Below are positions 29,202-33,197 of a stretch of 64,000 nucleotides of DNA, in pieces. The number at the start of each line of letters is the position of its first letter. Positions within the stretch are counted from its first letter, which is position 1. Below the pieces are notes generated by a model. It searched no databases, was not told the DNA's origin, and saw only the letters and a program-made list of their open reading frames with translations. This stretch comes from Oculina patagonica (lineage: Eukaryota): the NCBI RefSeq assembly GCF_052425735.1, contig NC_135761.1, forward strand, positions 51,956,001-52,020,000, read 5' to 3'. Both the position numbers and the translations under genes were made by a program.

Positions 29202-31009
29202 TTAAAGTTCAGGGTGCAAGCTCTGGCCGCAACTTCGACAGTCAATATCGTCATCATACTCTTCGATAGCTGAATTAAGTGGCTTGTAAGATCGAGCTTT
29301 CCATACCGTTTTGAGGCCAGACCAATTGCTCTTTGTGTTAGGATCACTGAGGTTATCAAGGTCGGCTCGGCGAAGCAGTTTGCCATCTTTTACTTGAAAC
29401 ATAGGATAGTTGTTGTTCTCGTTTGCGTCTACAAATGGTATGTAGTCTGTCACCACACTTGAATCTGTTGTCTTCTCAGGATACAGGAACGCGTTGTAAA
29501 CGTGATTGACGGACGCCTGGACCGCATCTATTGCAATTCTGTAGTTGCCTTCACTCTCTTCGTTCAACAGCATGCCGTCGCCATAAGCAATCCACTTATC
29601 ACCTCTTTTGTTTGTAACACGGAGACCGTATGTGTTGTCTTCGTCGTGCATGTATTTGCTCAGCAAGTGGCCAACTTTAGAAGGTGTTATTTGCTTTGCA
29701 AGTTCAAGCCTGGGTGTCCTAAGAATACAATGTACAGGAGTCATTAAAACTCGGTTATAATATTTCTTCATGTTGTGCCTCTTGGCCTCTATATTATTGT
29801 ACATCCGAAAATACGAGTATCCCCTGATTTTACCGAGAAAAAAATAAAAAATATTCGGGTATTAAAAATGAATGCAATAACAGAGGTACTACGCGCGATT
29901 TAAGTGAATCCTCAGCCGTGATCTTTTGAGGGACTGATGGTCACTCTAACAAACGGGGAAAATATTTATATCGTTTAAATCATTTTTGAATATGAATTGA
30001 ATGGCTACAAAATCTTTCAATTTTAATAAAACTATTTTCTTCGGCAAGCAGTGGACGATAGGAGCTGTACCAAGAAGTTGTTATGAACCAGAGTTTGAAA
30101 GACGATTTTAAATGACACTTCAACATGACTTCTTACACAAAAATGTAAACAAAAACTAATTGCTCTGGCGTTTTTACGTGCTTTTTCAAATCAACTATCT
30201 CACCTTAGATGTCCACTGGAAAAGCTATCTGTTAGAAAATGACAGGCAAACGCATCGATGGTATACGCTTCCTCAAGGAGCCTTATCTTTGTTTCTTGAT
30301 GTTTAACTTTACTTGCTTTTCTTGCCTTCTCCAAAGCCCACTCGTGGCCAGCTAAGAAAGCTTCTTTTGCAAACGGCAGGAAGTGGTCGTGATTGTTTTC
30401 TGCCAACTTCATCATTCGTCCAAATATGACAGGAAGACCTAAGAGCCATGTACCACCAGTGACTTCGTCCCACTTCTCTACCAGTGAGTTCCCTAGTTTA
30501 TCGTAGACATCTTTGGGAACCGTTTCTCCCTGACTCTCTAGCGCAGCTTCAATTTGACTCTTCTCCTTCGTCATTATTTTCAAGATCTGATCGAGTTCTT
30601 TCTTGATATCATCGTATTCTGCACTTGCTAGAGTGTTGTAAGCTGCGATAAAACGCTGGCGACGGCCAGTTGTCTTTTTATCATGTTCCTCGGATGGATC
30701 TATAATGGGGCTCTCTGGGACGCCGTAGAAATCTCCTGCTAAGGCAATGATTTGGCCAAAAGAAAGCTCCAATCCATTAGGAAGCCTCAGGAGGCGGTCA
30801 GCGCCCATCACGGCCTGCTCTCGACTACCACTGCACGGATTTGACACTGGAAATCGAAGCTTGACTTTATTTCCTATGTTTTCGTGCTCTGCTGACTCGA
30901 ATTCTTCTCCTTCTGTCTCCCCAGTATTGACTGACTCAGGTGTACGTTTGATAATGTTAGTCAACAGCTCCATAAGGCTTTTCTCCTGCGAAATTTCATC
31001 GGGCTCCAT
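29202..31009 (-). CDS. Zinc-dependent phospholipase C, Legionella PlcA/PlcB / Pseudomonas fluorescens PC-PLC-like family; 440 aa, exons 31009-30204 and 29718-29202
   Basis: Motifs FESAEH, ALAGDFYG, NHDHF, HFLTDSFSSGHLR|TPR, MHDEDNTYGLRV, W.AYGDG; a 485-bp GT-AG intron joins HLR and TPR in frame. Confidence 0.8.
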
Positions 31010-31904
31010 TGCAGTCGGTTTTGGTGTTATTTAGGACCCACGACAAGAAAACGTAGATATGACTTCTTTCTCTATGCGGAACATTCAGTGTATTTGCTTC
31101 AAAGCCTTATTCATCCTTTTATTCATTTAGGTCACGTGAACTTGTAGTGTTTGTTGTTGAGTGAATTTATGATTTAGAACTACCATTTCAATATTACGTT
31201 TAAGTGGAGGTCTTTTGTTTACTGCACAAAAAAGCAAAGCGTTTTGTTTCTAAGGCAGTAAGCTGGATCGAACTATGTTCTTCCTTCCTGGGTGCGGTCG
31301 ATGTAATTGTTGTGTCAAACAATGTTGATAGCTATGTTTTCTTTGCCGTGCTACATTGTATCTGTGAGTATTAAACTACTGAAACTGTCAATATCATGCA
31401 TGCAGTGACTTTTGAAATGAATTTTGAGGCACAGTTCAGTATCCTAGTGGTGCCTTATAAAAAGAACGCATAAACTGTTATTGAAAAAGTAACAATTTGC
31501 TTTAAAGTAAAAGTCGGAAGATAGCGGAAGATATTGACAACACCTATGTTCTGGTAATGAATAATAAACATCATGATAATTGCCTAAATTCACCCTTCAC
31601 AGATCGCGTCTAAGAAGTGTATCAGTATTGTATAAATAATTATTTATTTCAACGCTGTACAGCTTCGTTTCAAGCAACTGGATACAACATTGATATCATA
31701 GTTGTATTTCGAACTGTTAGAACTGCAGGGTAAAAGAGTTGCAGTGCGTTATCCCTGTGATTAATAAGCCTCTTCAAAATATGCGTGCGTCATTGTTGGT
31801 TATTAATTCATAGAGTATTTTTTTTAATTTTAGATCACAAAACCGTGACGTACTTCGAGTATGCTGCCAGCCGATTTCTTGGCCGTCTTGACTTGCATAT
31901 TAAG

Positions 31905-33197
31905 ATGGCATCCAGTCAATATTTTATCTATGTCAGTGAGTGGGAATTAGAAGAAGGAGACGGCGAGGAATCAGGAATCGAGAGTGGAGAAGGAGAAGAA
32001 GCTGGTAGAGGTCTGACGAAAAACGAAAAGGCTTGGAATTCTTGTGATAAGTTGAAAGCAGACGCCAATTATCACCAGCGATATATACCACTGAAAGATG
32101 CCCTTAGTTTCAAAGGTCTGTCCAGTGACGACAAGGAACAGTTCGTTAAAGAAAAAGCACTTACCGAAGAAGATATGATGTTCCTAAGTTCAGAGATGGC
32201 AGTAAAGTGTCTTGAAAGTTTTTCTGCTGCGGTAGTCTGCATTACTGTCAAGCTCACTTCATCGCAGGCTTACGGTACAGGCTTCTTTATCAGAGTTAAC
32301 AACGAAGATGTTGTCATCACTAATTCTCACAGCATAAGAAGCTCTCAAAGTGGCCTTGGGATTGATTTTCGTCTCGTCAAAGCGAAAGACGTGCGAGTTA
32401 TTTCGTTTTACGATGGAAAGGGAAGTAAGCAAGTAACTCGTGATGTGGCTAGAATCGAGAGAGCCTCGCCACCAGACAAGAATAAAGACAAAAATGTTTT
32501 AAAGGATTCTCTGACAGGAAAGCTCCATGGAGACGGGAAATCGGATACAGCCGATATCAGTAAATGTGACGTCGCACTGGAACTACTTTCTTCATATTTT
32601 AGCCGTAGAGATGCTTTTCTGGATTATGCGTTATTGTACTTGTCGCCACTGGAAAACGACGAGCAGAAAGCAAACTTTGCGATGGTTAAACCGCTGGAGA
32701 TGAAGGCTTTCGACAAACTAGAAAACTTTCGGAATGTTTCATCCTTCGAATTTCCTGACCCCAGGAGCTCAAAGTATTCTCGTTCGCTTCGACTCTTTGC
32801 CATCTCTCATCCGCACCGTGCAAGCAAACAAGTGTCGTTTGGAGGCTTGTTATCAAACCTAAAGCACGTTTACTTTCTGAATATGGCTTATGGCCAAAAT
32901 GACACTGGAATGTTAAGTGAAAAAGATCCCTTCGCTGAGCACTCCATTTCTACTTGTAAAGGTTCCTCTGGTGCTCCAATTTTTGTCTACATTGTTAACC
33001 ACGAAACTGGCGAGGTTGAAATTGAAGAATGCGTTTATTTCCTACATTTCTATGGAGACGAAACGGACGGAAAGTTTCGCGGGAAAGCGGTGTCATTTTC
33101 CACCATTATTCGAAATCTTCAGCTCCAGGCTACTCACAATGAACTGGCTGCTGCTTTAGCTGAGGTGGGAAACCCTGACGAGAATACAGAGCACTGA
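31905..33197 (+). CDS. Cytosolic trypsin-fold (PA clan, Trypsin_2-like) serine protease, ~430 aa, intronless CDS
   Basis: GTGFF, TNSH (His), LDYALL (Asp), STCKGSSGAP (Ser), FLHFYG; acidic N-terminus, no signal peptide; splice acceptor at ~31833 suggests a 5'-UTR exon. Confidence 0.85.
   Translation: MASSQYFIYVSEWELEEGDGEESGIESGEGEEAGRGLTKNEKAWNSCDKLKADANYHQRYIPLKDALSFKGLSSDDKEQFVKEKALTEEDMMFLSSEMAVKCLESFSAAVVCITVKLTSSQAYGTGFFIRVNNEDVVITNSHSIRSSQSGLGIDFRLVKAKDVRVISFYDGKGSKQVTRDVARIERASPPDKNKDKNVLKDSLTGKLHGDGKSDTADISKCDVALELLSSYFSRRDAFLDYALLYLSPLENDEQKANFAMVKPLEMKAFDKLENFRNVSSFEFPDPRSSKYSRSLRLFAISHPHRASKQVSFGGLLSNLKHVYFLNMAYGQNDTGMLSEKDPFAEHSISTCKGSSGAPIFVYIVNHETGEVEIEECVYFLHFYGDETDGKFRGKAVSFSTIIRNLQLQATHNELAAALAEVGNPDENTEH

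Follow-up and report, generated by a model that had tools for sequence, protein, structure and literature searches.

In a 64,000-nucleotide stretch of chromosome C4 of Oculina patagonica, a scleractinian coral (NCBI RefSeq assembly GCF_052425735.1, contig NC_135761.1, positions 51,956,001–52,020,000; hereafter the window, from whose first nucleotide positions are counted unless the chromosome is named), a gene for a phospholipase C (PLC)-like protein and a gene for a serine protease lie head-to-head, the former on the minus strand and the latter on the plus strand. We propose, with a probability of roughly 40%, that they constitute a coral-specific two-gene module in which the PLC is a protease-gated zymogen that is activated when the neighboring protease trims its N-terminal leader. 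The coupling is suggested by three indirect lines of evidence: conserved synteny, a G-E-E motif placed immediately before the Phe residue at which the PLC core begins, and a matching E-E in the N-terminus of the protease.

The PLC-like gene runs from an ATG at 31009 to a stop codon at 29202–29204 on the minus strand and encodes 440 amino acids in two coding exons. Exon 1 (30204–31009) encodes residues 1–268 plus two nucleotides of codon 269 and is followed by the splice donor GTGAGA, while exon 2 (29202–29718) encodes residues 269–440 and the stop codon, and matches the C-terminal portion of the NCBI model without any difference. The 485-nucleotide GT..AG intron between them (29719–30203), which had gone unmentioned in the initial annotation, is removed in spliced transcript contigs from three runs (X1–X3) and at least two studies, where the joint from 29717 to 30203 skips 485 nucleotides. 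The NCBI RefSeq model LOC144648836 begins at Met68 and omits the region 30808–31009 (minus strand), and with it the leader and residues Phe37–His42. Since transcript contigs reach 31069, 60 nucleotides beyond the ATG, and an in-frame TAA sits eight codons upstream, this region belongs to the PLC mRNA; the upstream 67 residues are also conserved in orthologues. The RefSeq model is too short and its start needs correction.

The protease gene (31905–33197, plus strand) encodes 430 amino acids in a single coding exon from its ATG, with transcript contigs in five runs. Both genes are expressed, their mRNAs turning up in the same runs. The divergent spacer between the two ATGs (31010–31904) measures 895 bp, and contains the PLC 5′ untranslated region, which extends to at least position 31069, as well as a splice acceptor (31833/31834) that lies upstream of the protease ATG; a second search of transcript reads for the 5′ end of the protease mRNA gave no additional junctions. 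At neither N-terminus is there a hydrophobic core of the kind found in signal peptides, the maximum Kyte-Doolittle value over ten residues being 1.38 for the PLC and 0.75 for the protease, and the PLC, which is of a bacterial/fungal type, is predicted to be cytosolic. The coordinates, the transcripts and the hydropathy profiles confirm what had been read from the DNA at the outset, namely two intact divergent genes about 0.9 kb apart, neither product carrying a signal peptide.

A separate observation concerns the splice acceptor. One contig of 179 nucleotides from run X1 joins 25121–25177 (plus strand), an exon of an upstream PAN/fibrinogen-like gene, in frame to the acceptor at 31834 (plus strand), which lies 71 nucleotides before the protease ATG. 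The upstream gene begins near 20275 and encodes a signal peptide. Support for the junction consists of this one contig, with 21 nucleotides on the upstream side; if the splice is real, it would create a secreted fusion isoform, and the whole PLC gene would lie within its intron on the opposite strand.

First, the arrangement is conserved. A synteny search had been suggested as a check on the pairing, and among 12 other coral loci, 10 anchored on the protease and two on the PLC, the head-to-head pair was found in 10, with protein identities of 54–77% and a spacer of 269–1494 bp in the nine loci in which it was measured. The O. patagonica genome contains four PLC-family genes and one full-length protease gene, and only the PLC of the G-E-E type adjoins the protease; the other three PLC genes form a tandem array about 200 kb upstream (C4:51770422–51789872). 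Among the retrieved coral loci, one Tara scaffold carries two protease copies (1821–3080 and 8001–9299 of the retrieved locus). In two long-read coral assemblies the reading frame of the linked protease (at 7826–9088 of one retrieved locus and near 8400 of the other) is shifted or broken by a stop codon, and in the first of these two residues are inserted into the PLC between the Phe and E-H; such lesions could reflect either decay or assembly error.

Second, the leader ends in a motif that resembles a cleavage site. The candidate pro-segment of the window PLC (MEPDEISQEKSLMELLTNIIKRTPESVNTGETEGEE; 30902–31009, minus strand) comprises 36 amino acids with a net charge of −7, ends in T-E-G-E-E, and is followed directly by the conserved core start F37-E-S-A-E-H42 (30884–30901, minus strand), just as the initial annotation had it. 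In orthologues the leader is 31–55 amino acids long and variable except for Gly at −3, Glu or Gln at −2 and Glu at −1, although it also holds a conserved N-I-I-K-R-T-P helix segment. The conservation of Glu before the Phe, which had been named as a point to check, holds across corals: of the 42 orthologue clusters whose N-terminus could be read, 38 have G-[E/Q]-E directly ahead of the Phe, with Glu at −1 in 38 of 38, and the information content is 3.8–4.3 bits at positions −3 to −1 compared to 1.5–2.6 bits at −4 to −12. Two exceptions without G-E-E are extra copies that do not lie next to the protease, in genomes that also carry a G-E-E copy; in one of these genomes, it is the G-E-E copy that adjoins the protease.

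Third, the disordered N-terminus of the protease contains the same motif, G30-E31-E32 (31992–32000, plus strand), a candidate self-cleavage site that matches the end of the PLC leader. Glu31 and Glu32 are invariant in 18 orthologues. In the 10 linked pairs, the window included, E-E is invariant, and the preceding Gly is present in nine.

Finally, in a tree calculated from the core alone, coral PLC paralogues form a sister clade with strong support, to which O. patagonica LOC144650543 (C4:51770422–51771889) belongs. In the 21 basal members of this clade the leader ends in G-x-D-x-[VI]-D directly before the Phe (DCVD, DEVD, DEID, DTVD, DVVD and DYVD), which looks like an effector-caspase site placed where a cut would expose the Phe. 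The presence of two clade-specific, site-like motifs that both end at this residue argues for cleavage of the leader at the Phe.

We assigned the PLC-like protein to a family through its bacterial relatives. It has no sequence match in Pfam, NCBIfam or the PDB, even with an 82-sequence profile; the Pfam and NCBIfam searches also covered bacterial and octocoral members, and a PDB chain search with a 61-residue fragment carrying the ligand motif gave nothing meaningful. When 1.84 billion proteins were searched with a profile built from seven full-length coral members, 2674 cluster representatives matched, 544 with E ≤ 1e-30; among the matches, one from a myxobacterial metagenome-assembled genome is annotated “phospholipase” and another derives from the octocoral Dendronephthya. 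In a tblastn search of bacterial genomes, one per species, relatives were encoded at 356 loci, and the best 80 of these 356 are nearly all from the Pseudomonas fluorescens group (37–41% identity, E 1e-78 to 1e-84, residues 32 to ~423), the alignments typically beginning at query residue 32, which is the Phe. The P. fluorescens open reading frame encodes 384 amino acids without a signal peptide, and its N-terminus reads MSGLELAAPEKTPPTLR followed by FEGGEH. It matches the published PlcC of this species, a protein of 385 amino acids and 42 kDa that is an active lecithinase, is 43% identical to Legionella PlcA, and shows no similarity to the classical Gram-positive zinc-dependent PLCs (Zn-PLCs) (PMC2613904). 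Legionella PlcC, as summarized in PMC7025538 with reference to Aurass 2013, is a Zn2+ metallophospholipase C that hydrolyses phosphatidylcholine (PC), phosphatidylglycerol and phosphatidylinositol. Because the P. fluorescens open reading frame matches the published PlcC, and because the identity of 37–41% extends over the full core, the coral protein can be placed firmly, as judged by sequence, in the zinc metallophospholipase C family of P. fluorescens PlcC and Legionella PlcA-B-C. The presence of this family in corals is not new, homologues of PlcA/PlcB in Acropora, Orbicella and Stylophora being noted in PMC6617341.

The candidate metal ligands are strongly conserved. In orthologue numbering, Asp89, Asp216, His217, His265 and His301 are invariant in the 82 family members, and Glu36, His37, His230, Asp269, His275 and Glu303 are at least 90% conserved; Asp304 is invariant in the seven-sequence coral alignment only. 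All candidate ligands are retained in the window PLC (His42, Asp93, Asp208, His209, His222, His257, Asp261, His267, His293 and Glu295). They include the metal-ligand motif H257-x3-D261-x5-H267 (30209–30241, minus strand), which is invariant or nearly so in the 82 members, and H293-D-E295-D296 (29637–29648, minus strand), which holds further candidate ligands. The N-terminal motif [FYW]xSxEHxx[IL]G[DN] is also conserved across the family. The coral PLC thus has in common with the PlcC/PlcA-B-C enzymes the [FYW]xSxEH start, the His/Asp ligands and the lack of a Pfam model, but differs from them in being an intron-containing animal protein, predicted to be cytosolic, with an acidic leader that ends in a conserved G-E-E and with a dedicated neighboring protease. 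No relative of the protease was found within 3 kb of the 80 Pseudomonas PLC loci, which led us to reject inheritance of the pair from a bacterial operon and indicates that the pairing arose in corals.

The fold was evaluated using an AlphaFold model of a full-length orthologue that is 68% identical to the window PLC (predicted local distance difference test, pLDDT, 87.7). Residues 1–30 of the model are disordered, the leader having a pLDDT below 50, and the ordered core begins at Phe32, which corresponds to Phe37 in the window. A Foldseek search of the model against the PDB gave no significant match. In an exhaustive structural alignment against 48,161 chains, the six best matches (1olp, 8cqm, 1ah7, 8qjl, 3w52 and 5fb9; 138–152 aligned residues) are all Zn-PLCs or P1/S1-type nucleases: Clostridium absonum alpha-toxin (Z score 7.7), Listeria PC-PLC (6.9), Bacillus cereus PLC (6.9) and three nucleases (5.3–6.0), although this range of Z scores (5.3–7.7) lies below the threshold of caution that the aligner sets for helical proteins. 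It is the agreement of the six matches together with the ligand motifs that carries our assignment of the model to the all-helical Zn-PLC/P1-nuclease fold. The description of the protein as a divergent Zn-PLC of this fold, given at the outset, is borne out by the exhaustive alignment and by the identity to the Pseudomonas proteins; the Foldseek search did not reproduce it, and no sequence profile of the classical Zn-PLCs matches.

Each of the six alignments starts at model residue 32 (the Phe), which in the solved chain faces residue 1 or the first residue of the mature protein. The Phe faces chain residue 1 in 1olp, 1ah7 and 3w52, and the other three alignments start at residues 10, 21 and 27 in entry numbering. 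Phe37 of the window PLC accordingly superposes on residue 1 (Trp1) of the solved Zn-PLCs and nucleases. In classical Zn-PLCs, the N-terminal Trp1 helps to build the zinc site, with the free α-amine of the mature residue 1 acting as a zinc ligand. Listeria PC-PLC is made as an inactive proenzyme from which the protease Mpl removes a 26-residue propeptide, and exact placement of Trp1 at the N-terminus is essential: the W1F variant is active, and one extra residue abolishes activity (PMC10576769). Among 75 non-coral relatives of the coral PLC, seven start with M-E-[SA]-x-E-H, so that their initiator Met falls exactly where the Phe would stand.

The protease is an orphan chymotrypsin-fold serine protease that represents a new, coral-restricted family of the PA clan. 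A profile search of 5.8 billion proteins recovered 51 clusters of relatives, all at least 44% identical, the named ones being from Oculina and Stylophora. The match to Pfam Trypsin_2 is weak (E 9.5e-6, just under the gathering score), and the only trace of family S32 in Pfam has an E value of 0.19. Neither the single sequence nor an 18-sequence profile gave a significant match to PDB sequences, and by sequence the protein falls outside the known glutamyl endopeptidase families (S1B V8-like, S1E, S32 and S39). Searches for closer relatives with the profile among the 5.8 billion proteins, in the AFDB clusters and in a viral structure library returned generic trypsin-like folds only. The model has a chymotrypsin fold (Foldseek E ~1e-5) with a disordered acidic N-terminus (residues 1–39) and a confident helical subdomain (residues ~56–107) before the barrels, at a moderate overall pLDDT of 67. 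Its structural Z scores (FAM111A 11.1, pro-Esp and V8 10.4, exfoliative toxin B 10.1, HtrA ~10) leave no match standing out, and a FAM111-like assignment was dropped because the top match, FAM111A, is tied with V8, Esp and HtrA.

The catalytic triad consists of His142 (T-N-S-H; 32328–32330, plus strand), the invariant Asp240 (F-L-D-Y; 32622–32624, plus strand) and Ser355, and is invariant or nearly so in the 18 orthologues. The nucleophile lies in H-S-I-S-T350-C-K-G-S-S355-G-A-P, in which Thr350, Gly353, Ser354, Ser355 and Gly356 are invariant (T350 to S355 at 32952–32969, plus strand), and the putative wall of the S1 pocket in Y-F-L-H381-F-Y-G384 (H381 to G384 at 33045–33056, plus strand), in which His381 is invariant and Gly384 nearly so. 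The two motifs that the initial annotation had singled out, S-T-C-K-G-S-S-G and L-H-F-Y-G, are both found in the protein. Thr350, five residues before Ser355, and His381, in the strand that ends at Gly384, take positions 190 and 213, and Gly384 takes position 216; these positions were assigned from the motifs and the secondary structure of the model, without residue-level superposition. All glutamyl endopeptidases have His213 and Thr/Ser190, a combination that Gln-specific viral 3C proteases possess as well, and Gly216 is present in V8, Esp and 3C (PMC5508998). The neighbors of the coral protease in a protein-language-model space include Peptidase_S39, S32 and C3, which are Glu/Gln-specific viral protease families. 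Because the signature is shared with the Gln-specific 3C enzymes, the S1 pocket predicts cleavage after Glu or Gln, not after Glu alone. The earlier term “Glu-specific” for the protease should thus be read as Glu or Gln at P1.

Compared with the glutamyl endopeptidases and 3C-like enzymes (V8/GluV8, Esp, the exfoliative toxins, Glu-SGP of S. griseus, arterivirus nsp4 and the sobemovirus protease), the coral protease shares the fold, the His/Asp/Ser triad, and Thr190 together with His213, with Gly216 as in V8 and Esp. It differs in having an N-terminal extension of 105 residues that includes a helical subdomain, and in that the catalytic His and Asp are set about 50 residues further apart; it shows no significant sequence similarity to any of these enzymes, and its family occurs in corals only.

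Based on these observations, we propose the following mechanism. Both genes would be transcribed divergently from the shared 0.9-kb spacer. The leader would keep the lipase inactive, since Phe37 stands where the classical Zn-PLCs have the zinc-site-building N-terminal Trp1. The neighboring protease, possibly after cutting itself between G-E-E32 and Ala33, would then cut the PLC between G-E-E36 and Phe37, and the freed Phe37 would complete the active site, allowing the enzyme to hydrolyse membrane phospholipids. A role in cell death, immunity or membrane remodelling may be envisaged.

Several points weigh against this proposal. As to the need for a free N-terminus, most bacterial relatives have either 0–6 residues between the predicted end of a signal peptide and the Phe, or short cytosolic leaders, and the PlcC of P. 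fluorescens, active at ~42 kDa, has been described as “secreted without cleavage” (PMC2613904), even if SDS-PAGE of PlcC could not resolve a loss of 17 residues. Since most relatives keep residues before the Phe and PlcC is reported as uncleaved, the free α-amine may not be needed in this family. The G-E-E motif could be conserved for folding or for a metal contact instead of cleavage. Gly216 together with His213 also fits Gln specificity, and the quality of the protease model, the way in which its S1 positions were assigned, the Foldseek result for the PLC and the low structural Z scores count on the same side. Two protease loci (ENA ERZ25067879 and ERZ25067868), from a divergent subclade that is about 55% identical, have no PLC within 10 kb. 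Moreover, divergent neighbors often share only regulation.

The last point leads to the most serious alternative, which we consider somewhat unlikely: the genes may be co-regulated neighbors at a bidirectional promoter, the protease having other substrates and the PLC being active with its leader in place or under the control of zinc, lipids or some other factor. Animal genomes commonly contain conserved divergent gene pairs. The apparent full-size activity of P. fluorescens PlcC (PMC2613904), the residues that most family members carry before the Phe and the two unaccompanied protease loci all fit this explanation. A complex prediction for protease residues 40–430 and PLC residues 1–70 lent the pairing no support, but its score of 0.00 is no verdict and counts as evidence neither way. 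Co-regulation alone does not, however, account for linkage retained in 10 of 12 loci at 54–77% identity, for a G-E-E placed exactly before the Phe and lost in unlinked duplicates, for the matching motif in the protease N-terminus, or for an S1 signature that fits the P1 residue (PMC5508998).

It is distinctly unlikely, in our estimate, that the leader is a pro- or regulatory segment handled in some other way, either by another protease or as an uncleaved autoinhibitory lid whose G-E-E carboxylates sit on the zinc site until displaced by a ligand or by pH. In favor of such a reading, the leader holds the conserved N-I-I-K-R-T-P helix segment, the Listeria propeptide inhibits in trans (PMC10576769), and the caspase-like D-x-V-D of the sister clade indicates that other proteases may gate members of this family. 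Left unexplained, however, would be why the only copy of the G-E-E type adjoins the only protease of its kind in the genome, and why that protease has a Glu/Gln-type S1 pocket. A nuclease or other phosphodiesterase activity for the PLC-like protein, P1/S1 nucleases having the same fold, is very unlikely: half of the six best structural matches (8qjl, 3w52 and 5fb9) are nucleases and the F-x4-H spacing presumably equals the W1..H6 spacing of P1 nuclease, but the three best matches are PLCs, as are the closest relatives of known activity, which act on PC according to the PlcC study and the Legionella summary cited here (PMC2613904, PMC7025538).

The proposed protease-gated module has its closest precedent in Listeria, where proPC-PLC (PlcB) and Mpl, the activating protease, come from the same virulence system, much as the coral protease is genetically linked to a PLC with a leader. 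The coral PLC is predicted to share its fold with PlcB, B. cereus PC-PLC and Clostridium alpha-toxin, and with PlcB also an N-terminal segment placed directly before the zinc-site residue, a position at which Phe is tolerated (PMC10576769). It differs from the classical Zn-PLCs in showing no detectable sequence similarity to them and in a helical insertion of ~120 residues between the Asp and His ligands, and from the Listeria pair in that the protease is a serine and not a metalloenzyme, and that the setting would be the animal cytosol instead of a secreted bacterial virulence system. A looser resemblance, by analogy only, is to caspase and gasdermin: here too a latent cytosolic membrane-attacking protein would be released by one specific cut, and the sister clade carries D-x-V-D before the Phe. 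The coral effector would act as an enzyme (a phospholipase), not by forming pores. A broader extension of the model, which we regard as unlikely, would make the coral PLCs, of bacterial/fungal type, a family of cytosolic, protease-gated executioners that attack membranes, cut in one clade between G-E-E and Phe by the dedicated Glu-specific protease and, in the sister clade, between D-x-V-D and Phe by caspases, as a phospholipase counterpart of the caspase–gasdermin logic in cell death, immunity or bleaching.

The initial annotation knew of no such system in animals. This holds for the pairing and for the leader, on both of which our literature search found nothing, but not for the PLC itself, given the coral PlcA/PlcB homologues noted in PMC6617341. 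If the proposal is correct, the coral enzyme would be the first case among animals in which an N-terminal pro-segment holds a zinc phospholipase C latent until a dedicated protease frees it, and also a protease-gated membrane effector of a new kind in corals, in which the machinery of cell death, immunity and symbiont loss is poorly known. Two coral gene families that are uncharacterised would also gain a function, and one of these, the protease family, has no relatives outside corals. Whether the N-terminal position has to be taken by the conserved Phe matters in addition for the enzymology of the wider PlcC family, to which Legionella effectors belong. Should the coupling prove wrong, two results would remain: the corrected PLC start and the clade-specific, site-like motifs of the coral PLC family at the start of the catalytic core.

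Fragments of both genes flank the pair. A partial copy of the 3′ end of the protease gene lies at 26261–26488 (plus strand), comprises the last 76 codons at 91% identity and forms the final exon of the GenBank model ACROYT_G016540, while a partial copy of the 3′ end of the PLC gene, comprising the last 40 codons at 85% identity, lies at 37850–37969 (minus strand). Between the PLC gene and the upstream PAN/fibrinogen-like gene, an open reading frame of 102 amino acids (28127–28435, minus strand) has a C-terminal motif resembling that of tyrosine recombinases (GHSFRIGAAT...LGRWSS) and is probably the remnant of a mobile element.

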